DNA of 64,000 nucleotides, from the sequence record PV740454.1; one strand, 5' to 3'. Under the pieces are notes generated by a model, which was given only the letters and a program-made list of their open reading frames with translations, did no database searches and was not told the DNA's origin. Both the position numbers and the translations under genes were made by a program. Positions 3,170-40,556 of this stretch are shown here, piece after piece; the stretch's first letter is position 1, and each line of letters opens with the position of its first letter.

Positions 3170-4193
3170 TTTACCAATCGAAACAAAACAGTCTATCGTC
3201 AAAGCATCTGCAAACGGTATGACACAGAAAGACAACGCGGCGAAGCATGGTACTTCGCCAACCACTCTGCGCCGTGTTCTTGCTGAGCATCGTGAAGGTA
3301 AATTTAGTCTGAATACAGCAAAGCAAGTAGTTAAACGCCCTGCTAAAACTAAGTCGCTTGCAACTGACTTCAAATCAAACTTAGACGAGTTGCTAGACGC
3401 TACTGGTACAAAGCAGAAGATGAAAGCACCAGAGCCTGCTAAGACTCTTGAGCAGAAGCTAGACGAAGCGATTGAAGACTTTGCGTACGTCATTACGCCA
3501 GTTAACGTGTCGTTCACGCATAAAGGTCAGGCTTATTCTGCTGACATCACTGCACCGAACTACAGCAAAATCGTTGCTGCATTGCTTGAATCTGACGGCG
3601 AACTTGCAGTATCGCTTCTTGATGTTGCTAAAGGCATTGAAGAGTTCATGCTTGGTAACGTAGTAGTTAAAGGTGGCGTTGTTAAGTATCGCGATCTTGA
3701 CATCGACGGTGGTATGACTGACCGCATTCTTGAAGCAATGGAAGACGGTGACAAGTCTCAAGTGACTAAGCTGGTGAAGTTCTTCGAGAATCTAATCACC
3801 AACCCGTCTCGCCGCGCTGTAGAAGAGCTGTACGGCTTCTTAGAAGCTGCTGACATCGAACTAACAGACGATGGTCACTTCCTTGCGTACAAGAAGATTC
3901 GCGACAACTACAACGACATTCACAGCAACAGTATGTGCAATAAGCCAGGGTCTCGCGTGTGGATGCTACGTCACCAAGTGAACGACGACAAAGAACAAAC
4001 ATGTTCTGCTGGTCTGCACGTGTGTTCTAAAGGTTACTTGCCACACTTTGGCGGTGCTTCTGGTAATCGTGTTGTACTGTGTAAAGTCAACCCACGTGAT
4101 GTTGTGTCAGTACCATCAGATTACAACAACACAAAATTAAGATGTAGCGAGTATCTAGTTCTGAAAGAGCTAGACAAAAATACTTTGAAATAA
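3162..4193 (+). CDS. rIIB: RIIB protector from prophage-induced early lysis
   Basis: N-terminal HTH; C-terminal CSAGLHVCS and KVNPRDVVSVPSDYNNTKLRCSEY rIIB motifs. Confidence 0.93.
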   Translation: MVNLPIETKQSIVKASANGMTQKDNAAKHGTSPTTLRRVLAEHREGKFSLNTAKQVVKRPAKTKSLATDFKSNLDELLDATGTKQKMKAPEPAKTLEQKLDEAIEDFAYVITPVNVSFTHKGQAYSADITAPNYSKIVAALLESDGELAVSLLDVAKGIEEFMLGNVVVKGGVVKYRDLDIDGGMTDRILEAMEDGDKSQVTKLVKFFENLITNPSRRAVEELYGFLEAADIELTDDGHFLAYKKIRDNYNDIHSNSMCNKPGSRVWMLRHQVNDDKEQTCSAGLHVCSKGYLPHFGGASGNRVVLCKVNPRDVVSVPSDYNNTKLRCSEYLVLKELDKNTLK

Positions 4194-16007: not shown

Positions 16008-16630
16008 TGAATCCATACGACTTAGTGAGAAAAATGCAAAAAGTTGTTCACTCATGCACTACAGTTGAACAACTACTCAATGCAAGAAAGTATCTGTTAC
16101 GCTGTCACACTTACGCGCAAGAGCAATCAGATCAAGCATTCCTCGTGATTGTAACTGAAATTGATGAGCTAGACGAGCGCATCACCAATAAGATTGTTGA
16201 ATTGTCTGACACTCGCGGGATGATGGCAATTGAAACGGGCGTTATCAAAGTTGGTATCGATATTCATGGTGTAATCGATCAAGCACCAGAGTTCTTCGCG
16301 CTACTGAGTAAGCTACCAGTCGAAGTTCATATCATCACTGGTATCAAGAAAGAGCTTGACACTGATGTGCCAGACGACTTAGAGTATGATCATTGGTTTA
16401 GCATTCATCAAGAGTGTGAAGACCGTGGTATCGAAATCAAATATGATGAGAAACAACGCCCATGGGTTGCTGATGAGATTTGGAACAACATGAAAGCAGA
16501 ATACTGCAAGAAGAATCACATCAATATCATGATAGATGACTCACCAACGTATGCTAAAACATTCGAAGGTCTTGATACTTTCTATCTGCAACTCACCAAC
16601 GTTGTTCGTGATGAATGGAGACGAAAATGA
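16007..16630 (+). CDS. HAD-family (5'-nucleotidase-like) phosphatase with N-terminal extension
   Basis: VGIDIHGVID motif I variant, IITG motif II, MIDDSP motif IV. Confidence 0.65.
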   Translation: MNPYDLVRKMQKVVHSCTTVEQLLNARKYLLRCHTYAQEQSDQAFLVIVTEIDELDERITNKIVELSDTRGMMAIETGVIKVGIDIHGVIDQAPEFFALLSKLPVEVHIITGIKKELDTDVPDDLEYDHWFSIHQECEDRGIEIKYDEKQRPWVADEIWNNMKAEYCKKNHINIMIDDSPTYAKTFEGLDTFYLQLTNVVRDEWRRK

Positions 16631-16851
16631 AACCAGTCACTGAAGTACTACACGAGATTATTGTAATGGCTGAAGATATACATCAATGCGTTGTGGCAGT
16701 CGTTCACGAACGATATGAAGGGTGTTGGTACTCGATTAAAGAATGCGTGTACGATAGAGAGAAACGTCATTACGAATTGGTTGTGTACGTCGATGGTAAG
16801 AACGTCGATTGTATTGTGACTCTACACGAACTAGAAGGAAGACGCAAATGA
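16627..16851 (+). CDS. small acidic paralog family, member 1
   Basis: SIKECVYDREKRHYELV motif. Confidence 0.6.
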   Translation: MKPVTEVLHEIIVMAEDIHQCVVAVVHERYEGCWYSIKECVYDREKRHYELVVYVDGKNVDCIVTLHELEGRRK

Positions 16852-17063
16852 ATAGCGCAGCGATAATGCAAGATTACATGCAACTCAAAGAAGCATTGAT
16901 TTATATGCTCGATGATATGTTTGACGGCATGGGTCACATCGACCACATAGAGTACTTCGAAGACGAACAGATGTGGGATATTCAATACTATGATGGTAAT
17001 GAACTGCATGAAGTATCGGTAACTACTATCGCTCTTGATCATTGGATGGACAAAAACAAATGA
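16848..17063 (+). CDS. small acidic paralog family, member 2
   Basis: HIDHIEYFEDEQMWDIQ motif. Confidence 0.65.
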   Translation: MNSAAIMQDYMQLKEALIYMLDDMFDGMGHIDHIEYFEDEQMWDIQYYDGNELHEVSVTTIALDHWMDKNK

Positions 17064-17251
17064 CAAACTACTGTATCTACCACGAAGAACTAAAGTCAAT
17101 CTTGGAACTGCATATCAATAACGTCATCAAAGTAACTGCTGTGTTCGGCAGTGTCGGTGATGCGTATCGTGTACTATATGATGGTGAGTTTGATAAGAAA
17201 GGGTTCGTTGTTCGCGAAATGGCACAACTACGCTTGAAGGAATCCAAATGA
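17060..17251 (+). CDS. hypothetical protein
   Basis: ATGA overlap tiling. Confidence 0.6.
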   Translation: MTNYCIYHEELKSILELHINNVIKVTAVFGSVGDAYRVLYDGEFDKKGFVVREMAQLRLKESK

Positions 17252-17481
17252 ACATCGAACAAACAATGAAGAACTACTCACGGATTATAACTGCAATCCA
17301 TAAACTGTTAGTTCTTAAACCTTACCAAGACATCTATGACATCGAATACGATGAAGACAGACTTCTATTCGAAGTCACCATCGTAACTGAAACACATAAC
17401 GGAACAGAATACGACGACGCTAAGATAACTGTTCAACTACTTGAAGACTACATGATGAGGAATCCACATGAAACTGCCTGA
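17248..17481 (+). CDS. small acidic paralog family, member 3
   Basis: DIYDIEYDEDRLLFEVT motif. Confidence 0.65.
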   Translation: MNIEQTMKNYSRIITAIHKLLVLKPYQDIYDIEYDEDRLLFEVTIVTETHNGTEYDDAKITVQLLEDYMMRNPHETA

Positions 17482-17638
17482 ATACCTAAGTCACATTTCA
17501 GTTAAAGAAAACGTAATCACTATCGACTCAGCACGCGATAAAGTATTAGTTGTTGAGTTTCTTACTGCATCAAAAGCTAAGTTCCATATCGTTCAAAAGA
17601 CCGTTAGTCGTTGCGAAATTCATGTGAAGAGAATCTAA
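17468..17638 (+). CDS. small hypothetical protein (56 aa, not in ORF track)
   Basis: GAGGA SD; fills gap. Confidence 0.55.
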   Translation: MKLPEYLSHISVKENVITIDSARDKVLVVEFLTASKAKFHIVQKTVSRCEIHVKRI

Positions 17639-17639
17639 T

Positions 17640-18170
17640 ATGACAGAACCAACACTTACTAACTGGAACGAGCTTAAAGACAATAGCTTAGTGTATCGTA
17701 TCAATAACGAAATACTACACCCAATGGGATATGCTGCTGTACTCAATACCGAAACTGGTACGAGTGATCGCGTGCTCAAAACAGATAAGTTTGAATTCCC
17801 AGTCGATGTACACGACAAACATAAAAACAATGTCACTATGTCTGGGCTACTCGCGACTCATAAAGCTGTTGAAGCTCAAATCGCTGCTAAGTTCGGACTA
17901 GATGAATTATGGCACAATGTAATCGATAAAACAGATTGGTATTTCACGTGCGACGAAGAAGTAATAGAAGAGTCATACGAGTTTGTATTCGCCAAAACAC
18001 TCGATGAACTCGAAGCAGAAGACTACTACTCTATTGAAGTATACGGAACATCTATCTGGCGCTCAACTGATAAAGAATACTTCTTAGTAGTTGGTAACGA
18101 CGGTTGTGGCAATCAAGATATGTATCTGTTCTCGGCAAGCAATCTCGTAAAAGAAATAGAAATTTATTAA
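17640..18170 (+). CDS. hypothetical acidic protein
   Basis: ORF tiling. Confidence 0.7.
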   Translation: MTEPTLTNWNELKDNSLVYRINNEILHPMGYAAVLNTETGTSDRVLKTDKFEFPVDVHDKHKNNVTMSGLLATHKAVEAQIAAKFGLDELWHNVIDKTDWYFTCDEEVIEESYEFVFAKTLDELEAEDYYSIEVYGTSIWRSTDKEYFLVVGNDGCGNQDMYLFSASNLVKEIEIY

Positions 18171-18172
18171 AC

Positions 18173-18249
18173 AAAAGGGTTGACACATGTCAGCCCTTTT
18201 TTGTATTATAGCTACATCAAAACGAAACACGAAAAAGGAAAACATTATG
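18173..18249 (+). promoter_or_regulatory. terminator-fused early promoter/leader cassette
   Basis: GGGTTGAC-ACAT-GTCAGCCCTTTTTT; TTGACA-18-TATTAT; AAGGAAAACATT-ATG. Confidence 0.85.
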
Positions 18250-18471
18250 AACATCAACGACACTATCAAACAAGTTATCGCATACCGTGCTACTGAAGAA
18301 GGTAAACATGCTCATATCGCTGTATACCCTCGTAACTTCTTTCTTCAATCACCTTCAGTTCTTGTATGGCACCCAGAACAAGATAACAAAGATGTCGCTA
18401 TCTCTGAACAAGAACTTAAAGAATGGCGCGCTGCCGCTCGTGTTCATAAATTCATCGACATCGTTAAGTAA
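18247..18471 (+). CDS. hypothetical protein
   Basis: Cassette ATG. Confidence 0.7.
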   Translation: MNINDTIKQVIAYRATEEGKHAHIAVYPRNFFLQSPSVLVWHPEQDNKDVAISEQELKEWRAAARVHKFIDIVK

Positions 18472-18480
18472 GGATTCATT

Positions 18481-18657
18481 ATGATTTCAACAATCGCTGC
18501 TATACTAATAGCGTTCATGCTACTCGTGCTGGTAGTCAATGAGTTCAAAAACTTTCTAGATGATGACACCCGCGCTTACATAATCATTACAGCAACTGCT
18601 CTTGCAATCACTAATGCATATGCTGTTTTCAAACTAGAACACTATCTCATACCATAA
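18481..18657 (+). CDS. small 2-TM membrane protein A (58 aa, not in ORF track)
   Basis: AAGGA SD; MISTIAAILIAFMLLVLVVNEFKNFLDDDTRAYIIITATALAITNAYAVF. Confidence 0.65.
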   Translation: MISTIAAILIAFMLLVLVVNEFKNFLDDDTRAYIIITATALAITNAYAVFKLEHYLIP

Positions 18658-18666
18658 GGATAGACC

Positions 18667-18861
18667 ATGACTGTTATCATACTATTCCAAATGAGTATAT
18701 TCGCACTACTGCTGATGATACTCGTTAATGACAACAACAAATTCCTAGCAGATGGTGTCAAAGAAATACTACTCGTATCTGCTATCACTATATGTCTGAT
18801 TAATACTTTCTTTATCAGTCAATACGCAAGCATGTACAACATGCTAATGGAGAAACTATGA
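18667..18861 (+). CDS. small 2-TM membrane protein B, paralog of A
   Basis: AAGGA SD; LVNDNNKFLADGVKE aligns with VVNEFKNFLDDDTRA. Confidence 0.65.
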   Translation: MTVIILFQMSIFALLLMILVNDNNKFLADGVKEILLVSAITICLINTFFISQYASMYNMLMEKL

Positions 18862-19019
18862 CACTACTAACTATGATAATACTATTCGTCGTGCTGTCTA
18901 TAATCACAGTAACAATAGCTATTAGCTTTATCAACAACCCTGGCTTCATTAAACTAATGATTTTCGCTATCACAGGCTTTATCGCTTATGTGCTACTGAA
19001 TGTGATAGTCGCATCATGA
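18858..19019 (+). CDS. small 2-TM membrane protein C (53 aa, not in ORF track)
   Basis: ATGA overlap, GGAG SD; two hydrophobic helices around NNPG. Confidence 0.6.
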   Translation: MTLLTMIILFVVLSIITVTIAISFINNPGFIKLMIFAITGFIAYVLLNVIVAS

Positions 19020-19105
19020 GTGATATACCAATCAATTATATCATGCTTCTGCTATGCGTTCTAGCAGGGGTAGCTGGATGGTGCTTGAGCGATATCGGCA
19101 AATGA
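19016..19105 (+). CDS. small membrane peptide D (29 aa, not in ORF track)
   Basis: ATGA overlap; ends GWCLSDIGK. Confidence 0.45.
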   Translation: MSDIPINYIMLLLCVLAGVAGWCLSDIGK

Positions 19106-19121
19106 CTATATAAGGCAAACT

Positions 19122-19301
19122 ATGTTTATTATCTCAATCGCTATTTTTCTATCTGCAATCTACCTAATATGGACTGATAATAGCACAGATAACCTAGAAA
19201 GAATCTTAGCGCAAGTGATACTGCTAATGGCAGCAGCAATCAACTGCGTAGCTCAATGGGCTCTAAGCGACATTCTATCAGTAACGATGACTATATCATG
19301 A
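19122..19301 (+). CDS. small 2-TM membrane protein E (59 aa, not in ORF track)
   Basis: TAAGG SD; contains QWALSDI like D. Confidence 0.55.
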   Translation: MFIISIAIFLSAIYLIWTDNSTDNLERILAQVILLMAAAINCVAQWALSDILSVTMTIS

Positions 19302-19403
19302 TGTACTGCAAAAACGCTTAGAATACCACACAGACAGGCTCAGAGCATAGTACAACACTCATTGTTTTTTAATATATCGCACCCCGGTTCGTTTTCTACA
19401 ACA

Positions 19404-19512
19404 TGTGGGTAAATCTGTGGATAATATGTGTGTGAGACTGTGCATAAGTGTCTGAGATATGTGGATAAAAACAGAAATCAACTGTGGATAAGTCTGTGGA
19501 TTACGTGGATAA
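19404..19512 (-). repeat. array of seven co-oriented DnaA boxes (candidate origin or DnaA sink)
   Basis: TGTGGATAA at 19416, 19460, 19483; TGTGCATAA 19439; one-mismatch boxes at 19404, 19495, 19504; in gene-free gap 19302-19670. Confidence 0.8.
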
Positions 19513-19670
19513 GTTTTTTGGCTAAAAATAGCAAAAGGCTCATCGGGAGTGGTGGGAATTAGAGAACATCGAAGAACATCGAAGGTGGTAAAGAACTTAC
19601 ACCATTTCTGAAAAATAATTTGACACCACTTGCGCTTATGTGAGAAGATAGCGCGGTGAGAGGAGAGAAT

Positions 19671-20195
19671 ATGAAACAATTGATATTAAAAGATCGCATG
19701 AGTTTGCGCGTGGTAGATCAAGTGCATAGAGTGCATTACCATACGTTGCGACATGAGAATCGAACTGGTATGCCGTTTAATGTTGAGTGTAAAGGTGATG
19801 ATTGTGTTGTGTGTTCGCATGTTGACGGGTTGATTGCAGCACAGAAAGGTTCAGAGGCGTGTAATTTACGAGCTAAAGTGCAATACCAAGTGCGAGTAAT
19901 CGACTTGAATGATGTATCGAGTGGTGTACAAGTGTTGTGTTTCAGTCGCACGTTGCTTGATGCCGTGACTGATGCGCTTGAAGGTTCAAACGAGCGTGAG
20001 TATCGACCACTTGAGATACGTTCATCTGAATTTGCTCGTGGGTTTCGTAGTTATAGAGATTCATTTGCTGGTAATGTTATTCGTACAGCAATTAAGATGA
20101 AATTCAAGTCAACTGAAGAGTACAAGCTACCGTTTTACATTACGCCGTATGATGCTGATGCGATTCTGCGACATTTATTGAAGGGGTTAACATGA
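19671..20195 (+). CDS. gp32-like Zn-binding OB-fold ssDNA-binding protein lacking acidic tail
   Basis: H...C...CxxC ligands; RAKVQYQVRVID, GVQVLCFSRTLLDAV, GFRSYRDSF parallel T4 gp32 KRKTSYWANILV, GKVFKYRFGKKIWDKI, GFSNYDESKF. Confidence 0.65.
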   Translation: MKQLILKDRMSLRVVDQVHRVHYHTLRHENRTGMPFNVECKGDDCVVCSHVDGLIAAQKGSEACNLRAKVQYQVRVIDLNDVSSGVQVLCFSRTLLDAVTDALEGSNEREYRPLEIRSSEFARGFRSYRDSFAGNVIRTAIKMKFKSTEEYKLPFYITPYDADAILRHLLKGLT

Positions 20196-20338
20196 TTACA
20201 TTAGCTTTGTTCTATATGAGTCGAGATATGAGTTACAGCGAACGACCAAGTGACTTGTATATGGGTACAGTGATATTAGATTTTGCCTTAATCGCGACTG
20301 TGTTTTGTGGTATTATGATGTTTACGGGAAATTGGTAA
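20192..20338 (+). CDS. small membrane protein (48 aa, not in ORF track)
   Basis: ATGA-type overlap, GGGG SD. Confidence 0.5.
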   Translation: MITLALFYMSRDMSYSERPSDLYMGTVILDFALIATVFCGIMMFTGNW

Positions 20339-20952
20339 TGAAAAAGATTGAATTGAAGAAGAAAGTAATAGAGAAGAAAGGTGTCTTGCCAGATCAAGTT
20401 ATGGTGCGAGTTGAGACGTATTACCGTTCATTGAGTGGTTATTTGAATCATCTAAGTGCTGAGCATAAGTTACGTGGTATTACTTATTCTACGCATATGC
20501 TTGTTACAGAAGATGGTGCATTCTTCAGTATTGACGAAGACCGTTTGAATGGTGATAAGCAGACACGTGAAAAGCACGATGGTCAGTTAGTTGCAGTACA
20601 TGCGCGTTTACAATTGCCATCGAAAGATTGGGATTGGTATCCATGCAAGTGGAAAAGCGGTCGTCTTGTGTATACGTACAAAGAGCAAGATTTCGTAGAA
20701 GAAGAACACGAGCTAGTGGTTGGTGAGATTATCGACATTTATGCTGCTGATGATGAGCAAGCACGTTCGCCTCATGATGCAACTATCATTGTGAGTCGTC
20801 CGAAGCAAATCGTTGTTGAAGCGTATAGTAGACTTGCGATATTCCATGTTAGTAATGCAGAGAACAATGGTGATTTGATTTCTGATTGTGGTGAGTATCG
20901 TTTAAGTGGCAAGTACGCTGCTAGTGAATACGACGAAGAGCTTCATTCGTAA
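20338..20952 (+). CDS. hypothetical protein
   Basis: TAATG coupling. Confidence 0.7.
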   Translation: MKKIELKKKVIEKKGVLPDQVMVRVETYYRSLSGYLNHLSAEHKLRGITYSTHMLVTEDGAFFSIDEDRLNGDKQTREKHDGQLVAVHARLQLPSKDWDWYPCKWKSGRLVYTYKEQDFVEEEHELVVGEIIDIYAADDEQARSPHDATIIVSRPKQIVVEAYSRLAIFHVSNAENNGDLISDCGEYRLSGKYAASEYDEELHS

Positions 20953-20961
20953 AAGTTAAAG

Positions 20962-21042
20962 AAAAGGGTTGACACATGTCAGCCCTTTTTTGTATTATCT
21001 CTATATCGAAACGACATCGACTAACAAAGAGAGAATATTATG
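20962..21042 (+). promoter_or_regulatory. terminator-fused early promoter/leader cassette
   Basis: Same hairpin and leader as 4200. Confidence 0.85.
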
Positions 21043-21396
21043 TTTAACGCTACTACAGTACTAAACCAACTTACACAATCAAACAACGGTCAATCTCGCT
21101 TAGTTGCTATGACTGGTGCTAAGAACTTGCTTCAGTCTGAAGAGAAACAGTTTGTTTCATTCAAGCTGCCGAAAGTAGTACGTGGTATTAACTACGTGAA
21201 AATCACTCTGAACAGCAAAGACCTATATGATGTTGAGTTTGGTAAAGTCTCTAACAAAGCTTGTCCAGAAATGAAAAAGCTTGGTATTAAAGTGATGATG
21301 CCGAATTACGACGTGAAAACAGTAGTAAACGACGTATACAATGACTCGTTAAAAGCTTGTTTTGAACGTGAAACGACTCTTTTACTATCTCTATAA
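21040..21396 (+). CDS. conserved phage hypothetical protein (MTGAK motif)
   Basis: Cassette ATG; L.QL...MTGAKN...INYVKITL..DLY. Confidence 0.7.
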   Translation: MFNATTVLNQLTQSNNGQSRLVAMTGAKNLLQSEEKQFVSFKLPKVVRGINYVKITLNSKDLYDVEFGKVSNKACPEMKKLGIKVMMPNYDVKTVVNDVYNDSLKACFERETTLLLSL

Positions 21397-21406
21397 GGAA
21401 AATATT

Positions 21407-21769
21407 ATGTCTATTCCATCAATTGTTGGTAATATCGCTGCTGATTTGCTTGAAAACACCGAGCTTTTAAGCGATTACACGTCTTATACTTGCTTTATGC
21501 TAGAAGACAAAGCATACAATCACGTAGAACACAAGATTGATTTGCTTGAGTACATTCACGTTTCAGGCATTGAATTCATCTTGGCAATTCGTGATGGTAA
21601 AGTGAAACTGCCATTTGTACTAGGCGAAGATGCTGAGCGAGACCTCAATACAATGATCGCTGACCAATATGCAGGCGCTTTTGTACACGTTTTAGCAAGC
21701 GGTGATATGGAAAAATTCACTGTCATACGCTCAGAATGGTTGAAATTCCTTGCAAAAGAGGCAAAATAA
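21407..21769 (+). CDS. R.xWL paralog family, member 1
   Basis: YTC...GAFVH...RSEWLKFL. Confidence 0.75.
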   Translation: MSIPSIVGNIAADLLENTELLSDYTSYTCFMLEDKAYNHVEHKIDLLEYIHVSGIEFILAIRDGKVKLPFVLGEDAERDLNTMIADQYAGAFVHVLASGDMEKFTVIRSEWLKFLAKEAK

Positions 21770-22185
21770 TGAAGAAAATCATACTTTTAGGTGCATTTTC
21801 AGCTATTTTGACTGGTTGTGGTGGTGATTGGGAGACATTAGAGCGCGTATATCTGATGCAGAGAACGCCAGCACAGCAAGCTATTGTTGACGAATGGGCT
21901 GTTCAATGTAAAGAGAAAGAGCTTGACCAAGGGTTGGTTGCTGGTTGTACAACGCTTGCTGAAGCGACATATGCGAATTACGGTGATAGAGTTGCATACG
22001 CTACTTACATTAGAAACGGTCGTGTGTATAAGCGTACGCCTTGTAATGTCGATGGACTTACTGAACGAGAAGGTTTAGTTTGCAGTGGTAAAGTTGAAAA
22101 AATCGTAATTAAATCTGAAAAACTGCTTGACGTAAGCTCCCAAAACCGCGATAATAGCTCTATCGAAACGAGATACGTTAACTAG
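21769..22185 (+). CDS. lipoprotein
   Basis: Lipobox LTGC; four further Cys. Confidence 0.7.
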   Translation: MKKIILLGAFSAILTGCGGDWETLERVYLMQRTPAQQAIVDEWAVQCKEKELDQGLVAGCTTLAEATYANYGDRVAYATYIRNGRVYKRTPCNVDGLTEREGLVCSGKVEKIVIKSEKLLDVSSQNRDNSSIETRYVN

Positions 22186-24443: not shown

Positions 24444-24839
24444 ATGAAACTACGTACACTAATCATCGAAGGCGCAGCAGAGCTAGTTCAAGACAAAGAG
24501 CTTTTATCAGACAAATCCCAATTCAGTTGCGGTCTAGTTGCAATGCACTGTTGTAAACACGTTAAATCATCTAGACAATTTCGAGTTTACGACGAAGCGC
24601 AGAAAATCATTCGTCTTGAAGCGAAGGTGTTTTTGAAAAAGATACTAGCTGATGACGAATCGATTATCGGGTTTAGCTTATCTGATGAACTACGCGAAAA
24701 AACAGAAGGTATGCTTGGTTACGAGTGTAATGCCTTTGTTCATACGCTATCAACAATAGCTGAAGACGTTCGCGACGCGAATCGATTCACTGCTGTACGT
24801 AAAGCATGGTTAACTCACTTAGCAAATGGAGAAGTATAA
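24444..24839 (+). CDS. R.xWL paralog family, member 7
   Basis: FSC...NAFVH...RKAWLTHL. Confidence 0.75.
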   Translation: MKLRTLIIEGAAELVQDKELLSDKSQFSCGLVAMHCCKHVKSSRQFRVYDEAQKIIRLEAKVFLKKILADDESIIGFSLSDELREKTEGMLGYECNAFVHTLSTIAEDVRDANRFTAVRKAWLTHLANGEV

Positions 24840-25207
24840 TGTACGATTTAATGGCAGCAAAAGCACGTAAGATTCTAAGCGATTCTGATTTCATGACAAA
24901 CGAGCACGAGTTTAGTTGCCTTGCTATTGCTGGTTATGTTGAGCGTAACAGCGACATGCGTTACCGTGATGCAAGTGCAGCAGTGAAAGAGCTTGGTGCA
25001 TCGTTTGTTTACCAAGTGCTAAAAGACGACGTATTCATGCTTGGTTTTGAGCTATCAGATTATGCTCGTGCGAAGATCGCAGATGAAGTCGACCAGTTTG
25101 TTCATGATATCGCGTCATCATCTGAAGACAATATCGACCCAGAGCTGTTTCGACGTGCTCGTAAATCATGGTTAGAGTTTGTCATTGAAAATGGGGAAGT
25201 GCAATGA
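24839..25207 (+). CDS. R.xWL paralog family, member 8
   Basis: FSC...DQFVH...RKSWLEFV. Confidence 0.75.
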   Translation: MYDLMAAKARKILSDSDFMTNEHEFSCLAIAGYVERNSDMRYRDASAAVKELGASFVYQVLKDDVFMLGFELSDYARAKIADEVDQFVHDIASSSEDNIDPELFRRARKSWLEFVIENGEVQ

Positions 25208-25560
25208 TTTCATTGGTTGTTCAAGTAGAAGCATTCAAGTTGCTTGAAGACAAAGACCTTCTACGTGATACATGTCAGTACACATGTAATATTCTAGAAG
25301 ACAACGCGCATCGAGTCAGTGCATACGGTCGTATTGCTATTGGTGAATACATTGAAGCGAAAGGGCTAGAGTTCTTACAGTGCGTTCTAGACGAAGAAAT
25401 CAATTTCAGTTTTGATTTTGACCGTGAATCGATTGCTGATTCTGTACGTGATAAATTCCCGGGTGCATTTGTGAATCATATTTCAGGTGAAGACATAGAG
25501 TGTTTTGCTGAAGTTCGCAGAGCATGGTTAGAGTTTTTGACAGTGGAGCGTGACGTATGA
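25204..25560 (+). CDS. R.xWL paralog family, member 9
   Basis: YTC...GAFVNH...RRAWLEFL. Confidence 0.75.
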   Translation: MISLVVQVEAFKLLEDKDLLRDTCQYTCNILEDNAHRVSAYGRIAIGEYIEAKGLEFLQCVLDEEINFSFDFDRESIADSVRDKFPGAFVNHISGEDIECFAEVRRAWLEFLTVERDV

Positions 25561-25904
25561 AATTAGAAGAACTAGCAGTAGATCATCCGTATTACTGTTC
25601 AGACAGTAATTACTACAGTAATGACGCGGGGTGTTCGTTTGAGACAGCGACTGACTTTCTAGAAGAGTTCAACGACGCTGACATTGACATGAACTTGGTT
25701 TTTCGTTGGGATGTCAAGCCGCATTTAGACGAAACAGAAGAAGTCACAGACAAGTTCTACGCTGATGTGTTTATGATACACCAACGCAAAGGTATTTTCG
25801 CGCCGTATCACATCGAGTCTATTACAGAGGACGAAGCATCTAGTTTCGCTGAGTATCTACGTAGACATAAAGAAGCATTAACTAAGTTATGGGAGCCGTT
25901 ATGA
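25557..25904 (+). CDS. hypothetical acidic protein
   Basis: HPYYC...NLVFRWD. Confidence 0.7.
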   Translation: MKLEELAVDHPYYCSDSNYYSNDAGCSFETATDFLEEFNDADIDMNLVFRWDVKPHLDETEEVTDKFYADVFMIHQRKGIFAPYHIESITEDEASSFAEYLRRHKEALTKLWEPL

Positions 25905-26137
25905 TTTTCTTCAATATCTTATTGCTATACGTGTTCATTGCTGTTATGCTGTATCTGTACAGCGCGGGTTGTGAATACGCTATGTACAAGTTAAAAGGTC
26001 ACCTAGATAGCAAGTTTCCAATCACATTCTTTGACACTCACAAGATGATTGCTGCTGGTTGTTTCTTGTGGTTACCTATTCTTATGTTCATTGTTCACAA
26101 TGAAATCGTGAATTTGAAATCGAAGTTCAAGAGGTAG
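25901..26137 (+). CDS. 2-TM membrane protein
   Basis: Hydrophobic helices. Confidence 0.65.
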   Translation: MIFFNILLLYVFIAVMLYLYSAGCEYAMYKLKGHLDSKFPITFFDTHKMIAAGCFLWLPILMFIVHNEIVNLKSKFKR

Positions 26138-26139
26138 AC

Positions 26140-26445
26140 ATGAAAGACTACAATCGAACGTTAGTAGGGATCAACTACAAGAGCGGTATTAAGGTAGCGT
26201 TTTGGGTTTACAACATGAAAGTTCGTTCTCGCGGTTCATCGTATGAGAGAATCAATTGGTCTTCAGCTACTCCGCCAGTTGATCCTCATATGCAAGAGCG
26301 ACTAAAGCACATATCAAAGCATGTGTTAATCGGTGAGCCGCCTATTTCGTTAGCGGGTGATATTAATGACATTGAAAGCGTATGGAATCTTTATTCATAC
26401 GAAGGTGAAGATGGTAGAAAGCCAGAGGAAGAAGATGAAATTTGA
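26140..26445 (+). CDS. hypothetical protein
   Basis: GAGG SD. Confidence 0.65.
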   Translation: MKDYNRTLVGINYKSGIKVAFWVYNMKVRSRGSSYERINWSSATPPVDPHMQERLKHISKHVLIGEPPISLAGDINDIESVWNLYSYEGEDGRKPEEEDEI

Positions 26446-26626
26446 TTTTGTAGTAGACGTATTCTTGACAGTAGTTATGCTGTTCGTCGGTGTCCTTCAG
26501 CTAGTTGTTGGTGCATTGCTGTTAATCTTAGGTGTTATCATTGGTGTAATTGCGATTGTTGGTGGTGTTATTATTACTGCTATTGTATGGCCATTGATTC
26601 AGCTTTACGAATGGATCGCGAAATGA
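26435..26626 (+). CDS. very hydrophobic small membrane protein
   Basis: Gly/Val/Ile-rich; GAGG SD. Confidence 0.6.
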   Translation: MKFDFVVDVFLTVVMLFVGVLQLVVGALLLILGVIIGVIAIVGGVIITAIVWPLIQLYEWIAK

Positions 26627-26943
26627 TAGACTTAAAATCGCTTATCAAGAACGTGAAACAAGCTCGTGATCATCCAGAACTCGACTTATGTCGATGTAGC
26701 GTATGTCATACTGATTTTAAAGTCAGTGAATGTATTCACGACTACGGTCACCATGACGGTTGGGAAATGCCGGCTTATACAGAGATTCAATGTCCTGATT
26801 GTGACGAAGGTTGTATTGAAGATTTCTGGTCAAGTGATAAAGCAGTTCTTGAGTACGGTGAATATCTACAAGAGAACGACCCAGAGCGTTTTGACGAGTA
26901 CAAGACGTATTATCCAGATGTGTATGGAGAGAAAAATGTATAA
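26623..26943 (+). CDS. Zn-ribbon protein
   Basis: CSVC...CPDC. Confidence 0.65.
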   Translation: MIDLKSLIKNVKQARDHPELDLCRCSVCHTDFKVSECIHDYGHHDGWEMPAYTEIQCPDCDEGCIEDFWSSDKAVLEYGEYLQENDPERFDEYKTYYPDVYGEKNV

Positions 26944-27091
26944 TGGTGATATGAACACGCCTGCGGGATTAGATTTCGACAAGCGTTCAGAGACGTATGA
27001 AGATTATTTGCTAAAGAGCAAAGACAACTCTGATTACTCGCGCCGAGTGAAGCGAGCTATTAAAGCGAAGCAAGCTAGACGTGGTTATTAG
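26936..27091 (+). CDS. small hypothetical protein
   Basis: GGAG SD at internal ATG of track ORF 26666. Confidence 0.55.
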   Translation: MYNGDMNTPAGLDFDKRSETYEDYLLKSKDNSDYSRRVKRAIKAKQARRGY

Positions 27092-27092
27092 T

Positions 27093-27302
27093 ATGAAAAT
27101 TCGCAAAGGCAGTGTTTTAGAAGAGACGTTGTTAGGTGATGTGTTCAACTACAAGATCGTTTCTCCAGTGACGAGCGTTGACAAAAAGCAGTCTTTTACA
27201 ATGCAAGTTGTTTCTGTTGCGGGTAAGCAAGTCGTGAATGGTTATAGTGCCAACGTCACCATTTACAAAACATCTAGCAGATTTAAAGTACGAGAGTATT
27301 AG
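27093..27302 (+). CDS. hypothetical protein
   Basis: ORF tiling. Confidence 0.6.
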   Translation: MKIRKGSVLEETLLGDVFNYKIVSPVTSVDKKQSFTMQVVSVAGKQVVNGYSANVTIYKTSSRFKVREY

Positions 27303-27311
27303 AGAGGAAAT

Positions 27312-27746
27312 ATGATTTATCGATTTTGGGAAACACCAACTAGCGATTGTCTAATTGAAATCATACATGATGGTAAAGAAGACGGTGAGCGTGCTTACAT
27401 CACCGACATGATTGATTTCTATCATACAGAAAATGGTCGTCAAGCGTTGTTGGGTCATACTGATGGTTGGGGAACTGTTAACTTTACCAAGTATGATATT
27501 CGCGAATTAAAGTGTCTTGGTCGTATTGAGACTAAACCTCTTACATTATCAGCGAATGACAAGTCTGTTTTGAGTCGTTGCATTGATAAAGAAGGGTTTA
27601 ATTACGCTATGTTTGATTACAGCGATTATCAATCAGTCGAACGTAACGTTGTTCAGTCGCGTGAGTTTCATGAGCTACGCAACGGCTTGATTGATGCGAA
27701 GAGCAAACTACAAACTTGGTTAAAGATGCAGGGGATTGACGCATGA
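27312..27746 (+). CDS. hypothetical protein
   Basis: GAGG SD. Confidence 0.7.
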   Translation: MIYRFWETPTSDCLIEIIHDGKEDGERAYITDMIDFYHTENGRQALLGHTDGWGTVNFTKYDIRELKCLGRIETKPLTLSANDKSVLSRCIDKEGFNYAMFDYSDYQSVERNVVQSREFHELRNGLIDAKSKLQTWLKMQGIDA

Positions 27747-27897
27747 TCAAATACAAAGTTCGACCAGCGTTGTTTGGTCTATTATGGAAAGTTGTGCTTC
27801 ATGCTAACAGTTATGATCGTGCGACTATGAGTTTTCACACTACGTTTGCAGGTGCTATTGATTGTGCGCGTGCGTTGCAAGAAGAGGAGCTGTGATA

Positions 27898-28221
27898 ATG
27901 AGTCAGATGGAATACAACAAAGGCGTATTGACGCTTATTGATCAATCGCCTGAGAGTCTAGCTGAAGAGCTTATTACAGAGTTACCGTTATATTACGATT
28001 CTAAGCTTGAATGCTTACGTGACAACTCAGAAGCACATGGTCTAGTTTTTATTCTAGACAAGTGTTACCGTGTCACGTTTGAGCGAGAAGCAGAAGACTT
28101 GTATATGATTGCGAATGCAGACGTACAAGACAATGGTGATATTCATTTCGAAACGTATCATTACAATGGTGGTGCGCATTGGACTGAAGTCGTAGAAGGG
28201 GCGTTACGTGAAAATCGATGA
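27898..28221 (+). CDS. hypothetical protein
   Basis: GGAG SD. Confidence 0.7.
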   Translation: MSQMEYNKGVLTLIDQSPESLAEELITELPLYYDSKLECLRDNSEAHGLVFILDKCYRVTFEREAEDLYMIANADVQDNGDIHFETYHYNGGAHWTEVVEGALRENR

Positions 28222-28498
28222 ATTCATAGCAACGCCGTATGTACGTTCTAGACTATCGATGGTCGACAAATACGGAGATGTTGTGGTCACTTGTTCTAGT
28301 GAGTGGCATATGGATCATGTTGAGCGTGTGTTACTTGAGAACGCTAAGCTCAAAGAAGCACTTGGGAATACGCTTACGCATATCGATCAGGTAGAAAACA
28401 GTATGATGCGAATGGGCGTTGATGAAGTTGTACACGAAGATCTACCACGCGATTTACCGGAGTGGGATTTTCAAGAGTACGTGCAGTTGAGCAAATGA
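28208..28498 (+). CDS. hypothetical protein
   Basis: Overlap tiling. Confidence 0.65.
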   Translation: MKIDEFIATPYVRSRLSMVDKYGDVVVTCSSEWHMDHVERVLLENAKLKEALGNTLTHIDQVENSMMRMGVDEVVHEDLPRDLPEWDFQEYVQLSK

Positions 28499-28544
28499 TA
28501 TTACTTAATCTATTAGCAACTGTGATTGCTGTATACGGTGTATT

Positions 28545-28847
28545 ATGACCAGAATTGAAGAACTAGAAACGCAGATTCGAATGTTGAAAGACGAGTTGAA
28601 TGAAGAGCGTAATCGCTGTCATCATACTCGCATTACATACGAATACAAATCAAACACGGGTAATTACGATCCAACGTGTGATTCGTATTGGGTCAATGTG
28701 AAGTGCATTGATTGTAATCATCGTATGACGTTTGATTCTGATGAAGACAATACCAATTACAGAATGGTTGGTGAAATCGGTTCGGGTGGTCGAGTTGAGA
28801 CTCACGACTATGACACATATTTGAAAGTTAAGGGGATACTAGAATGA
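28545..28847 (+). CDS. coiled coil plus Zn-binding hypothetical protein
   Basis: CHH, CD, CIDC. Confidence 0.65.
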   Translation: MTRIEELETQIRMLKDELNEERNRCHHTRITYEYKSNTGNYDPTCDSYWVNVKCIDCNHRMTFDSDEDNTNYRMVGEIGSGGRVETHDYDTYLKVKGILE

Positions 28848-29179
28848 AATACGCACGTTACACTGAGTTCAACGATCATGAAGGTGAAACCTGGCATCGA
28901 TTTATTCCAATGACGGATCCATGTCTAGACAAGTTTCTAGATGTGATGAAGACCGTTGAAGATTCAGACGATACCTTTTCAATCGAGATTGACGGCGAAG
29001 GTAAGGTTGTTCAGTACGATGAATCATACGTTAAAGTGCTAGTTGACGAATCAGCTATGTACATGAACGGTTACATGGATGCATATGCCGTGTGCAACAT
29101 CAACGAAGACGCTTTAATATACACGAGCGACTACGAAGAAGCGTACGAAATGCTATACAAGATGGGGTGGGCGAAATGA
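28844..29179 (+). CDS. hypothetical acidic protein
   Basis: E.ND.EGETW motif. Confidence 0.7.
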   Translation: MKYARYTEFNDHEGETWHRFIPMTDPCLDKFLDVMKTVEDSDDTFSIEIDGEGKVVQYDESYVKVLVDESAMYMNGYMDAYAVCNINEDALIYTSDYEEAYEMLYKMGWAK

Positions 29180-29499
29180 GTCAAGCATTAACAGACTTAG
29201 CGATCAAGTTCAACGAAGCGCATAATTACAGCACAGAGCCAAATGAGTTGTACGAGACGTTCATTGAATGTCTAAGCAAACGCATCGTACAAGAAGAAAC
29301 CGAATCTGAGCATCGTTGGTATGACATTCGTTCTGTCGTACACGCTGTTGATATCGACGGGACAGAGCGTTACTTCGAGACGTTTGACTATCACATTACT
29401 GGTGATAACTCGGCGCGTGATATGGATTTGGACATGCCGACGCTTGAAGACGTGGTAGAAGTTCATCCGCATCAAGTTACAATGACAGTTTACAAGTAA
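29176..29499 (+). CDS. hypothetical protein
   Basis: ATGA overlap; ends at terminator. Confidence 0.7.
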   Translation: MSQALTDLAIKFNEAHNYSTEPNELYETFIECLSKRIVQEETESEHRWYDIRSVVHAVDIDGTERYFETFDYHITGDNSARDMDLDMPTLEDVVEVHPHQVTMTVYK

Positions 29500-29500
29500 T

Positions 29501-29643
29501 AAAAGCCCCTTAATTGGGGCTTTTTTAGGTTTGAAGAAAATAATTCCCATTTATTGGCAAAAAAGGCTTGCGTTGGTGGTGGTGATTTCGTATTATAGCT
29601 ACATCGAAACGAGATACACAACTAACAAAGAGAGAACATTATG
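29501..29643 (+). promoter_or_regulatory. terminator plus early promoter/leader cassette
   Basis: AAAGCCCC-TTAATT-GGGGCTTTTTT; TTGCGT-17-TATTAT; ATCGAAACGAGATACACA; AGAGAGAACATT-ATG. Confidence 0.85.
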
Positions 29644-30198
29644 TCTAGCAACTTAAACAACATCACAATCAAAGACATTCGCGAATTTGGTATCAGCACT
29701 GTTGAGTACAAAGACTTCACTATCTTTGCTACTGAATCTGACGGTGAAATTGAACTACGTGCTGCTGTACTGTACGATGCAGATTCAGATGCTCACGTGT
29801 CAGTAACTCAAGTTTACGCAGACACGTTACGTGAAGCGAAAGAGTCTCTTCAAACTGAATTGAACGATATCAAGCACAGTGCTGGTCAAATCGCGGGTAT
29901 GGCGCTTGTACTAGACTTTGTGGGTTCATATGAAGCTTTACTAGCTGAAGTTGAAAAATCGCGTACAGCCCCACAGAGCGCGTCTGAGACGGTATCTAAG
30001 AAACCAGCTCGTGGTGAATCAGCAAGAGCAGAGATTGCAGCGATTGCAACTGAGCATTTAGGTCTTGAAGATATCACATTTGAGAAGCGTGGTAAGAATG
30101 GTTTAGACTGGTACATTGTCGCGACTAAAGATGGTGCTGAGTTTGTTAAGCGTCTAGACGTATTCAAGAAAACATTGAAATCAATGGGTGTGTTATGA
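29641..30198 (+). CDS. hypothetical protein (early)
   Basis: Cassette ATG. Confidence 0.75.
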   Translation: MSSNLNNITIKDIREFGISTVEYKDFTIFATESDGEIELRAAVLYDADSDAHVSVTQVYADTLREAKESLQTELNDIKHSAGQIAGMALVLDFVGSYEALLAEVEKSRTAPQSASETVSKKPARGESARAEIAAIATEHLGLEDITFEKRGKNGLDWYIVATKDGAEFVKRLDVFKKTLKSMGVL

Positions 30199-39872: not shown

Positions 39873-40556
39873 ATGTTTGATTTACTGTTTAACATCAACC
39901 ACACTGTGTTTTCAATAGGCGATTATGCAGTATCTGGTCTAGAACTTTGGGCTACAATCACTGGCTTGGTATGTGTCATCATGGCGCGTATGAACATGAA
40001 GCACAACTTCACAGTCGGCATTGTGAACTGTATCGGATTTGCGATTCTGTTCTTTCAGATTCAGCTATACAGCGACGTGCTCTTACAGGGATTCTTCATT
40101 GCAGCAAGTGCATACGGGTTCTATCAGTGGAATAAGAAAGACGACGATGAAGTCCTCATTCAATATATGACGCCGCTAAGCACGTTCCTTGCTATCAGCT
40201 TAACCGCTATCGCAACATACGCACTTACCCACAGCATTGACACGATAATGTGGATAAGTGGCAACATTCTTGTGGATAACTATGAACATATCCCAGCAGC
40301 ACTATCTGGATTAGATGCATTCACAACGTGTGCGAGTATCATGGCGTTCATGCTGATGATTCAGCGTAAAGTCGAAGCGTGGTTGTTCTGGGTAGCAGTG
40401 AACGTCGTGTGTATCTACAACTACAGCGCACAAGGTGTTATCGTAGTCGCAGTCGAGTACTGTATCTTCCTAATGAACGCTATGTTAGCGGTATTAACGT
40501 GGCATCGTGAAGCATCACAAAACAAGTTGATGCTTGACTTGAAAGAGCAATGGTGA
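39873..40556 (+). CDS. pnuC: nicotinamide riboside transporter PnuC
   Basis: LELWATITGLVCV, YSD..LQ.FF...YG.YQW, DAFTT, RK.E.W..W..VN. Confidence 0.9.
   Translation: MFDLLFNINHTVFSIGDYAVSGLELWATITGLVCVIMARMNMKHNFTVGIVNCIGFAILFFQIQLYSDVLLQGFFIAASAYGFYQWNKKDDDEVLIQYMTPLSTFLAISLTAIATYALTHSIDTIMWISGNILVDNYEHIPAALSGLDAFTTCASIMAFMLMIQRKVEAWLFWVAVNVVCIYNYSAQGVIVVAVEYCIFLMNAMLAVLTWHREASQNKLMLDLKEQW

Follow-up and report, generated by a model that had tools for sequence, protein, structure and literature searches.

A local GC-skew dipole at a conserved non-coding gap of Vibrio phage CZ01 as a candidate replication initiation zone

Why should the GC skew of a phage genome invert within a long run of genes that all point in the same direction? 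The question is raised by a locus in the first 64 kb of the genome of Vibrio phage CZ01 (247 kb), a T4-like phage of the nt-1/KVP40 group; this 64-kb stretch is referred to below as the window. A first-pass annotation described the inversion between 16,500 and 22,000, centred it on a gap containing DnaA boxes, and read it as the polarity of a bidirectional origin. The inversion is confirmed, with C exceeding G to the left of the gap and G exceeding C to the right. The five hand counts of G and C on which it was based are all exact on recount, and plus-strand GC skew in 400-nt windows passes from -0.21 at 18,600-18,999 to +0.38 at 19,400-19,799, stays at or above +0.24 until about 21.0 kb, and then falls to about +0.02. 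Every annotated gene from 6.6 to 61 kb lies on the plus strand, as had been stated, and the argument that transcription cannot explain the flip is supported as far as the direction of annotated genes is concerned. Cumulative G-C over 16,500-22,000 has an earlier local maximum at 17,222 and a minimum at 19,402, a local one within the interval predicted (about 19.3-19.5 kb), which coincides with the left edge of an array of seven DnaA boxes. The dipole consists of three parts:

17222..19301, plus strand: left arm, genes CZ01_032 to CZ01_040; synonymous sites have C>G and A>=T
19302..19670, no strand assigned: conserved 369-nt non-coding gap, the dipole centre, unannotated in CZ01
19671..20952, plus strand: right arm, genes CZ01_041, CZ01_042 and CZ01_043; synonymous sites have G>C and T>A

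A genome-wide scan, in which 1.5 kb to the left was compared with 1.5 kb to the right every 50 nt, places the largest skew step of the 247-kb genome at 19,400 (+0.40 at all sites, 6 SD; +0.82 at third codon positions, 5 SD); the steps at true switches of gene orientation are just +0.19 to +0.22. The same anomaly has its outer edges at 17,250 and 20,900-21,150, where the scan reaches its most negative steps, and its skew fades in no more than about 2 kb to either side of the gap. Such a flip is unique within the two genomes CZ01 and KVP40. At the scale of the genome, however, there is no replichore switch. Skew is positive over nearly the whole window, with no genome-level inversion, and the cumulative curve has its global minimum at position 1 and its maximum at the end of the record, not at the gap. 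A minimum lying elsewhere had been named beforehand as grounds for rejecting an origin, and this is formally the outcome because genome skew follows gene orientation. The coding strand has one and the same synonymous bias in minus-strand and plus-strand genes, and there is therefore no replichore component. The flip at the gap is a local footprint and not an origin signal of the chromosomal style. Taken literally, the proposal of a chromosome-style, bidirectional and DnaA-dependent origin that separates two replichores of opposite skew is very improbable: a conserved seven-box array does lie at the switch point and the polarity is correct, but skew is back at the genome average no more than about 2 kb away on either side, whole-genome skew tracks nothing except gene orientation, minus-strand blocks share the bias of the plus-strand genes, and KVP40 flips with no perfect DnaA box in 245 kb.

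The left-right difference in skew (0.38) is distributed over codon positions 3, 2 and 1 in shares of 64%, 30% and 6%, and the flip survives at fourfold, NNY and NNR sites, as the synonymous-site check suggested in the first-pass annotation had anticipated for an origin. Its polarity (C>G with A>=T on the left, G>C with T>A on the right) has the signs of divergent strand opening at an origin, again in agreement with that annotation. The arms contain or adjoin the following elements:

18173..18209, plus strand: PeSL cassette 1, inside the negative arm, a terminator stem-loop with an embedded TTGACA followed by TATTAT
18481..19301, plus strand: five tiny hydrophobic ORFs with 1-2 TM, CZ01_036 to CZ01_040
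20960..20998, plus strand: PeSL cassette 2, terminator and promoter, bordering the positive arm on its right

The five hydrophobic ORFs (GRAVY +1.1 to +2.05) have position-2 skews of -0.23 to -0.88 in four cases and +0.45 in the 29-aa CZ01_039, and account for part of the non-synonymous component. The caveat that small membrane ORFs might contribute thus explains much of what happens at position 2, but that position carries only about 30% of the effect. Membrane-protein composition alone was rejected, since the soluble left genes by themselves give a third-position skew of -0.42. Pooled over the left arm, fourfold GC skew is -0.10 (genome, +0.22) and the NNR G-fraction 0.15 (genome, 0.35); in the right arm, fourfold skew is +0.71, with an NNY C-fraction of 0.25 vs 0.49 and an NNR G-fraction of 0.50 vs 0.35. 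Among 396 sliding 1.5-kb blocks, the left arm has the lowest and the right arm the highest synonymous G/T-versus-A/C index, the two arms standing at the 2nd and 98th percentiles of that axis. Codon optimisation was discarded, the arms lying at the 65th (left) and 27th (right) percentiles of its axis, and an inverted duplication does not account for the flip. Third-position skew reaches about +0.54 to +0.56 in CZ01_041, +0.37 in CZ01_042 and +0.38 in CZ01_043; among 260 genes of at least 100 aa, CZ01_041 ranks 1st and CZ01_043 4th. On the other side, the most negative third-position skews (to -0.68) belong to genes 3′ of the near-consensus promoter of PeSL cassette 1. Both flanking elements fit the PeSL criteria (an A3-4G3-loop-C3T3-4 stem-loop with a sigma-70-like promoter), a motif class described for nt-1 (PMC4122927); the gap at the centre does not belong to this class.

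The gap is conserved, with 90% identity in nt-1 and, across positions 9-245, 75-80% in some 12 further vibriophages, and contains three elements:

19310..19395, no strand assigned: conserved blocks 1 and 2 (CTTAGAAT...TCAGAGCAT...AT-rich run...ATATCGCACC..G..TCGTT), from alignments
19404..19512, minus strand: seven co-oriented DnaA boxes, three perfect TTATCCACA and four with one mismatch
19620..19649, plus strand: predicted sigma-70-like promoter (TTGACA, an 18-nt spacer ending in TGA, GAAGAT), from sequence reading

Blocks 1 and 2 are kept in all seven phages aligned, KVP40 included; they gave no consensus RNA structure and no Rfam match, and the conserved phage block was not found in Vibrio genomes. 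The skew switches 19-32 nt past these blocks in six of the seven phages, and the bias starts in non-coding DNA upstream of the predicted promoter. The latter is followed by a Shine-Dalgarno sequence (GAGGAGAG) and the ATG at 19,671; in five of the seven phages the distance of its TTGACA from block 2 is +249 to +251, as against +239 in nt-1, and none was found in F86. A minus-strand sigma-70-like match in the gap is weak and overlaps block 2. The late-promoter motif TATAAATA does not occur in 15-23 kb. Direct reading of the gap revealed no GATC cluster and no Mot-box/-10 arrangement of the MotA-type middle promoter; the only AT-rich run visible is one of 16 nt in block 2, and no long unwinding element is evident.

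The DnaA boxes span 109 nt, with start-to-start spacings of 12, 23, 21, 23, 12 and 9 nt, and form the densest 150-nt window of the CZ01 genome (7 boxes; next best, 3). The 64-kb window as a whole holds 28 matches with at most one mismatch, 7 of them in the array, against 17.3 ± 3.9 expected, a total attained by none of 100 shuffles. The array is kept in nt-1, VH7D, phi-ST2 and QD01 and is reduced to five boxes in F86; its box positions are more conserved than its spacers (0.90 vs 0.76), the most variable box position being the N of TTWTNCACA. The array is thus a box cluster beyond chance and under constraint. Boxes do not, however, occur in all relatives that share the flip: KVP40 has none at the homologous gap, where no repeats were found either, and no perfect DnaA box in its 244,834 bp. 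The association of the flip with DnaA boxes therefore stands insofar as a real, conserved array lies at the switch point, but KVP40 flips without a perfect box, and we infer that the array is not the cause of the skew.

The comparison with relatives ties the bias to the site itself. The flip recurs with the same polarity at the homologous gap in six relatives of CZ01; in KVP40 this gap (98.7-99.2 kb) is the genome-wide maximum step (+0.33, 5.5 SD; third positions, +0.64). Left-vs-right Fisher tests (fourfold G/C, NNY C/T and NNR G/A in six phages) gave p values of 0.006 to 3e-8 in 17 of 18 cases, the single exception being NNY in F86, although these values overstate independence because the relatives share ancestry. 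Phages differ in the genes that lie to the right of the gap, and the bias is common to the non-homologous genes found beside it. The right-side bias decays with distance from the gap (rho -0.79, p 3.5e-8, n=33), and in F86 the paralogue nearest the gap scores +0.43, as against +0.08 and +0.17 in the two copies farther away; the synonymous bias is thus tied to distance from the gap and not to the protein family present. CZ01 and F86 have chance-level identity at fourfold sites and both show the flip, and these alignments indicate that it is maintained across lineages saturated at such sites. A PeSL lies 3′ of a conserved gene (family 0) in all seven phages, in F86 after the last of its three copies. 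The positive arm extends beyond the first PeSL in VH7D, KVP40 and QD01.

Known origins were scanned for comparable marks. The T7 primary origin and lambda ori have none, and in T4 no such mark was seen at oriC, oriE (step, -0.08) or oriG. The top third-position step of T4 (+0.54, 3.7 SD) lies 130 bp from oriF (ori uvsY), and uvsY, the oriF primer-RNA gene, has the highest coding-strand third-position GC skew of 171 genes (+0.57, with only 8 fourfold sites). Because oriG does not have this G-over-C signature in its primer transcript, the signature is not universal for the oriF/oriG class. The gap resembles oriF in that the site is the top third-position step of its genome, in that the first downstream gene ranks first for third-position skew (uvsY 1/171; CZ01_041 1/260), and in that a promoter transcript enters this gene, by a described mechanism at oriF (PMC3016281) and by prediction here. 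As judged from sequence, CZ01_041 appears to carry the empirical oriF signature, namely an extreme G-over-C gene read from an origin promoter. On the other hand, oriF has proven origin activity, uses a MotA-dependent middle promoter, is without DnaA boxes and is strongly skewed only on the primer-RNA side over about 0.6 kb, whereas the CZ01 gap is a candidate known from sequence alone, has a predicted sigma-70-like promoter, and is skewed on both sides over about 2 kb. Moreover, KVP40 and nt-1 have no recognisable motA (PMC2988021), so that the middle-promoter mechanism of oriF cannot apply literally.

In layout the gap may be closer to T4 oriE, which consists of iterons and an early-mode promoter (PMC3016281): spaced direct repeats lie in a non-coding stretch with small early genes adjoining, an early-mode promoter, on which oriE depends, is predicted at the gap, and repeats are kept in syntenic regions of relatives (PMC3016281). 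Repeats and a predicted sigma-70-like promoter are found in most CZ01 relatives, KVP40 being without repeats. The oriE repeats are 12-nt iterons with no known ligand and come without a skew step, whereas those of CZ01 are 9-nt host DnaA boxes, absent in KVP40. By analogy, the candidate zone is most likely oriF-like in signature and oriE-like in layout. Bacterial oriC shares with the gap a co-oriented DnaA-box cluster beside an AT-rich stretch and a switch from C>G to G>C, but its skew is replichore-wide, in contrast to about 2 kb per side in CZ01, and the gap has no GATC cluster or long unwinding element. At the ColE1/pBR322 origin, DNA synthesis is primed from the persistent hybrid of a G-rich RNA transcribed from a promoter, and helicase loading can be aided by a nearby DnaA box. 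This origin, which is unidirectional and relies on Pol I and RNase H of the host, is a precedent for combining an R-loop with DnaA boxes, although it has a single box and CZ01 an array of seven. GC-skewed R-loop promoters of mammalian CpG islands show positive GC skew for 1-2 kb downstream of the start site, mirrored upstream if they are divergent, and are linked to R-loops and origin specification; in view of their eukaryotic chromatin context, the likeness to CZ01 is an analogy of signature only.

The gap is most likely a fixed site at which the strands are repeatedly exposed with opposite polarity on either side. Our preferred, if tentative, explanation is that 19.3-19.7 kb is a promoter-driven, R-loop-type replication initiation zone to which the DnaA boxes are accessory. 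An initiation zone is supported by the origin-like anatomy of the gap, where conserved blocks of non-coding sequence occur together with an array of direct repeats and an early-type promoter that is likewise conserved. A transcript from the conserved sigma-70-like promoter would run rightward across CZ01_041 to CZ01_043; being G-rich and C-poor, it would favour a stable RNA:DNA hybrid and prime leading-strand synthesis. On the displaced plus strand to the right, C-to-T and A-to-G changes would build up, and/or selection for a stable hybrid would favour G-richness. On the left, the mirror-image bias may come from an oppositely directed fork or opening. The left arm requires a leftward process, the one promoter-like sequence for which is the weak minus-strand match. 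The effect would be local because most later T4-type replication is recombination-dependent and starts genome-wide. The seven-box array may be an accessory module in most relatives, serving the recruitment, titration or regulation of host DnaA.

The polarity of an origin would also arise from transcription that plays no part in replication but is divergent or unusually prone to R-loops. The non-template strands of a special transcription unit to the right of the gap and of a leftward transcript, absent from the annotation, to its left would be exposed and mutate, or G-richness would be selected at the RNA level. Such transcription would fit the linkage of synonymous bias to the coding strand genome-wide, the single transcription unit formed by the CZ01 right arm from gap promoter to PeSL terminator, and the promoter-like site overlapping block 2 on the minus strand. 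We nevertheless consider it unlikely. Ordinary early promoters do not generate such a step, nine other sigma-70-like promoters giving a mean of -0.05 and a maximum of +0.09; two identical PeSL promoters precede third-position skews as different as -0.68 and +0.02; and the top-expressed genes gp23, gp32 and gp18 have no raised fourfold skew. In addition, the negative arm spans a PeSL terminator/promoter, the positive arm passes the first PeSL in three relatives, and the late-promoter motif is absent from the region.

Improbable, too, is a compositional mosaic, in which the gap would be a junction between PeSL-bounded cassettes from donors with unlike codon usage, the membrane-protein composition of the left side adding to the contrast. 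In nt-1/KVP40, PeSLs have indeed mediated the shuffling of a hyperplastic region that takes up the first ~60 kb (PMC4122927), CZ01_041 is an ORFan with no counterpart outside CZ01 and nt-1, the genes present on the right vary, and position 2 and the hydrophobic left ORFs contribute their share. Polarity and magnitude, however, are alike in seven phages despite different inserts, and in conserved families too; a graded decay with distance, the most skewed F86 paralogue being the nearest, the persistence of the bias between saturated lineages and the skew of the soluble left genes all argue against a mosaic, and independent acquisitions are unlikely to have made both genome-wide extremes abut at one point in two genomes. 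Still less probable is synonymous selection for some translational or mRNA property of these early genes, for example timing, decay or a need to avoid structure. The one-sided base composition of both arms would lower mRNA self-complementarity, and gp23 and gp32 are also low on the G/T-versus-A/C axis, but neither arm is extreme on the expression axis, position 2 is shifted as well, distance from the gap governs the effect across unrelated genes, and the effect starts in non-coding DNA, upstream of the promoter.

For the nt-1/KVP40 phage group, the gap is a testable candidate origin. More broadly, it is possible, although we hold this with considerable doubt, that KVP40-like T4-type phages possess a dedicated early-promoter, G-rich R-loop origin, that most of their lineages have gained a DnaA-recruiting seven-box array, and that R-loop origins leave a local synonymous skew dipole. 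If this is true, the skew dipole of R-loop origins, also present at T4 oriF, would make the origins of T4-type phages mappable from sequence alone.

The window matches bases 1-64,000 of Vibrio phage CZ01 (PV740454.1) exactly; this phage belongs to the Straboviridae, infects V. natriegens and has a genome of 247,138 bp. The first-pass annotation had described a switch from C excess to G excess centred on a DnaA-box gap, on the basis of five hand counts, and had proposed a bidirectional origin at this site. The counts were reproduced exactly, and gene orientation is unchanged across the flip as stated, with every annotated gene between 6.6 and 61 kb on the plus strand. In 400-nt windows, GC skew is -0.21 at 18.6-19.0 kb, reaches +0.38 at 19.4-19.8 kb, remains at or above +0.24 up to about 21.0 kb and is about +0.02 beyond. 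Cumulative G-C passes from a local maximum at 17,222 to a local minimum at 19,402, so that the minimum predicted at ~19.3-19.5 kb does exist at the local scale. In a genome-wide scan comparing 1.5 kb to the left with 1.5 kb to the right at every 50th position, the biggest skew step in the CZ01 genome falls at 19,400 (+0.40 for all sites, 6 SD), where third codon positions step by +0.82 (5 SD). Real switches of gene orientation give steps of only +0.19 to +0.22 in the same scan, and the outer borders of the same anomaly, at 17,250 and 20,900-21,150, have the most negative steps. The flip is correct and stronger than its first description could know: it is a local dipole with arms of ~2 kb each, the left (17,222-19,301, CZ01_032 to CZ01_040) and the right (19,671-20,952, CZ01_041 to CZ01_043) flanking a non-coding gap (19,302-19,670). 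Elsewhere in the window, plus-strand skew is more broadly raised at 24,800-30,000 (+0.15 to +0.25, no sharp step), where fourfold skew is mostly raised as well (+0.4 to +0.8).

Across the CZ01 genome, codon positions 1, 2 and 3 have coding-strand skews of +0.31, -0.13 and -0.05, and fourfold sites have +0.22. By third-position skew, CZ01_041 (19,671-20,195; +0.56) ranks first and CZ01_043 (20,338-20,952; +0.39) fourth among the 260 genes that encode 100 aa or more (ORF calls). Because G- and C-ending codons fall into different amino-acid boxes, the synonymous site classes were separated.

Synonymous-site composition of the right arm, the genome and the left arm
Fourfold GC skew: right arm +0.71; genome +0.22; left arm -0.10
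NNY C-fraction: right arm 0.25; genome 0.49; left arm 0.57
NNR G-fraction: right arm 0.50; genome 0.35; left arm 0.15

All three classes separate the arms, so the flip persists at synonymous sites. According to these values, the plus strand to the right of the gap is C/A-poor and T/G-rich, and the left arm is its mirror image, with the opposite synonymous base bias; this polarity would fit an exposed strand on which C and A are deaminated. Codon position 3 accounts for 64% of the left-right skew difference, position 2 for 30% and position 1 for 6%. The caveat that amino-acid composition of small membrane ORFs could contribute holds only as far as position 2 is concerned: tiny hydrophobic membrane proteins are indeed encoded by the five ORFs at 18,481-19,301, but the soluble left genes by themselves have a third-position skew of -0.42, and membrane-protein composition alone was rejected as an explanation.

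The whole CZ01 genome was analysed to run the skew test that the first-pass annotation had proposed. Genome-wide, the cumulative curve shows no minimum around 19 kb, and negative skew in 5-kb bins occurs only at minus-strand genes (~78-110 and 150-164 kb). Read in coding orientation, these genes have a fourfold GC skew of +0.18 to +0.23 and an AT skew of about -0.12, both equal to those of plus-strand genes; because the two sets match, the general asymmetry is linked to the coding strand and lacks a replichore component. Together, the cumulative curve and the minus-strand genes rule out a genome-scale origin and refute the literal proposal of a DnaA-centred bidirectional origin splitting the genome. 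The published "origins" of phi-Grn1 and phi-St2 are global extremes of cumulative skew (PMC5107563), and these extremes merely follow gene orientation. The literature searched yielded no experimentally mapped replication origin in the KVP40/nt-1 group and no earlier account of the 19.3-19.7 kb locus, and DnaA, origins and skew all go unmentioned in the paper on the nt-1 genome.

About 30 vibriophages have a conserved version of the gap, and the flip recurs in the homologous gaps of nt-1 (94% identical to CZ01 across the flip region), VH7D, phi-ST2, QD01, F86 and KVP40, in genes from several non-homologous families. In the KVP40 genome as a whole, the biggest step is at the homologous gap (+0.33, 5.5 SD; third positions +0.64), and the runner-up reaches +0.16 at all sites. 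The three synonymous site classes give Fisher p values of 0.006 to 3e-8 in the relatives, with the exception of NNY in F86, and third-position skew on the right side falls from +0.38 at 0-0.5 kb to -0.15 at 2.5-3.5 kb from the gap (rho -0.79, p 3.5e-8, n=33 genes); the relatives are non-independent samples, and these comparative p-values are to be read accordingly. On the left side, the values with increasing distance are -0.39, -0.44, -0.50, -0.31, -0.22 and -0.20. Within one family of F86 paralogues, the copy nearest the gap has +0.43 and two farther copies +0.08 and +0.17. In six of seven phages (CZ01 and these six relatives), the switch point lies 19-32 nt past the second of two conserved blocks in the gap. 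Fourfold sites are only partially saturated between CZ01 and KVP40; between CZ01 and F86 their identity is at chance, and the bias is therefore maintained, not inherited, at that depth. A search of IMG/VR for further relatives returned KVP40 and VH7D as the only real matches.

The gap and its surroundings contain the following elements:
18,173-18,209 and 20,960-20,998, near-identical pair of PeSL cassettes (terminator stem-loop plus sigma-70-like promoter), AAAAGGG-TTGACA-CATGTCA-GCCCTTTT, then TATTAT
19,404-19,512, seven co-oriented DnaA boxes, three perfect and four with one mismatch
19,620, TTGACA of a predicted sigma-70-like promoter, ~45 nt upstream of CZ01_041

The two conserved blocks (19,310-19,395) are present in all seven phages, and neither an Rfam match nor a consensus fold indicative of structured RNA was found in them. 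Host oriC ancestry of block 2 was rejected: its 90 genome matches are scattered over unrelated taxa with Vibrio absent and are thus at chance level, and a likeness to E. coli oriC beside box R1 was dropped, being a 7-mer only. The DnaA boxes are better conserved than their spacers, and variation within them is concentrated at the degenerate position of TTWTNCACA. The relatives nt-1, VH7D, phi-ST2 and QD01 keep the array, and F86 has a reduced one. KVP40 lacks it; its whole genome contains no perfect DnaA box, and no iterons standing in for the boxes were found there. The offset of the sigma-70-like promoter is conserved in most relatives. Between array and promoter, AGAACATCGA is perfectly duplicated in tandem (19,563-19,582); nt-1 has a shorter, different sequence there, without duplication. 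A minus-strand ORF of 106 aa (19,359-19,679) crosses the array. Its counterparts (3,021-3,326 in the compared sequence L009; 3,010-3,135 and 3,203-3,292 in L010) are annotated as CDS in QD01 (QD01_174) and F86, and not in CZ01, nt-1, VH7D or KVP40; these annotations are probably artefacts of a repeat-rich non-coding gap. A second, small DnaA-box cluster lies inside pnuC (CZ01_096; 40,225-40,279), with one plus-strand box carrying one mismatch and two perfect minus-strand boxes. Perfect boxes in the 247-kb genome are confined to the gap array, this cluster and a single site at 47,754.

The PeSL cassettes correspond to terminator-promoter cassettes as defined previously (PMC4122927). The PeSL-flanked layout is shared by the relatives, F86 having the right-hand cassette only, and all seven phages keep the order of the module: DUF7415 gene, PeSL, small membrane ORFs, gap, variable ORFs with two conserved families, PeSL. 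Directly before the left PeSL lies CZ01_034 (17,640-18,170), whose N-terminal domain is DUF7415 (Pfam E 1.7e-7); the gene is conserved at this place in those relatives that were checked. No function for the neighbouring genes came from Pfam or PHROGs. The CZ01_043 family is confined to CZ01 and these related phages, and CZ01_041 is an ORFan found only in CZ01 and nt-1, with an H...C-x4-C-x2-C motif. A protein-atlas feature search with CZ01_041 scored 0.91 against viral clusters, and the model of the top hit has some structural neighbours in the gp32 ssDNA-binding family, a hint of a possible gp32-like fold; a PDB search with CZ01_041 gave no match, and the AlphaFold model built from its single sequence has a pLDDT of 33, too low to be of use.

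Several processes other than replication could be considered as sources of the dipole. Codon optimisation for expression level was assessed by principal-component analysis of RSCU in 221 CZ01 genes. PC1 is the expression axis, topped by gp23, gp32 and gp18, and neither arm is extreme on it (left 65th, right 27th percentile); PC2 opposes G/T-ending to A/C-ending codons and places the arms at the 2nd (left) and 98th (right) percentiles. When 396 sliding 1.5-kb blocks are ranked by a synonymous G/T-versus-A/C index, the bottom and the top block abut at the gap. The blocks at 25,889-28,221 are also among the highest in the genome for this index.

Transcription from an ordinary early promoter does not account for the flip either, given that steps at nine sigma-70-like controls averaged -0.05 and peaked at +0.09, and that in no other gap of 150 nt or more does the step exceed 0.09 in either direction. 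Downstream of the two identical PeSL promoters, third-position skews are -0.68 and +0.02, i.e., opposite outcomes; moreover, the negative arm spans a PeSL, and the positive arm extends past the first PeSL in three relatives. Late antisense transcription was rejected on the absence of the late-promoter motif TATAAATA from 15-23 kb, and an ancient inverted duplication on finding inverted matches that are only short and scattered, with no large one. A hotspot of double-strand-break resection was likewise set aside, being expected, by reasoning, to have the opposite polarity to that seen here.

For calibration, known origins of other phages were examined. The T7 primary origin and lambda ori, both within co-oriented gene blocks, have no dipole. 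Among the T4 origins, positioned according to the annotation of NC_000866 and the literature (PMC3016281), oriC, oriE and oriG show no skew step and oriA a weak one (+0.26). The dipole is thus not a general origin footprint, since T7, lambda and most T4 origins lack one. The uvsY transcript is the oriF primer in T4 (PMC3016281). The largest third-position step in T4 (+0.54, 3.7 SD) lies 130 bp from oriF, and we estimate a ~3% chance that the top site would lie 500 bp or less from one of five origins. Among 171 T4 ORFs, uvsY has the highest coding-strand third-position GC skew (+0.57), resembling CZ01_041 in both rank and size. Among the T4 origins, only oriF has a persistent R-loop that is well established, and oriF does carry the dipole signature. 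Among T4 sites with equal strand make-up on both sides, the largest all-site step (+0.30, 4 SD) is at ~110,100 between genes 24.3 and hoc, away from mapped origins.

The best-supported reading of these sequence signatures, although we would rate its chances slightly below even, is that the gap may serve as a local, promoter-driven initiation zone of the R-loop type, resembling T4 oriF in signature and T4 oriE in layout. The DnaA array, missing in KVP40, would best be read as accessory. This reading accounts least well for the mirrored left arm. Should the gap not be an origin, a conserved, distance-dependent synonymous strand bias of 5.5-6 SD inside a co-oriented gene block would stand as an unexplained mutational or selective phenomenon. 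If the gap is indeed an R-loop-type initiation zone, it would provide a candidate origin of ~370 nt that is precisely located, conserved and amenable to experiment. T4 itself is regarded as DnaA-independent, and an origin at this gap would suggest that the host initiator DnaA can play a part in a phage of the T4 type. Furthermore, a fine-scale scan of synonymous sites, which recovers T4 oriF, might then find R-loop origins in other phages.
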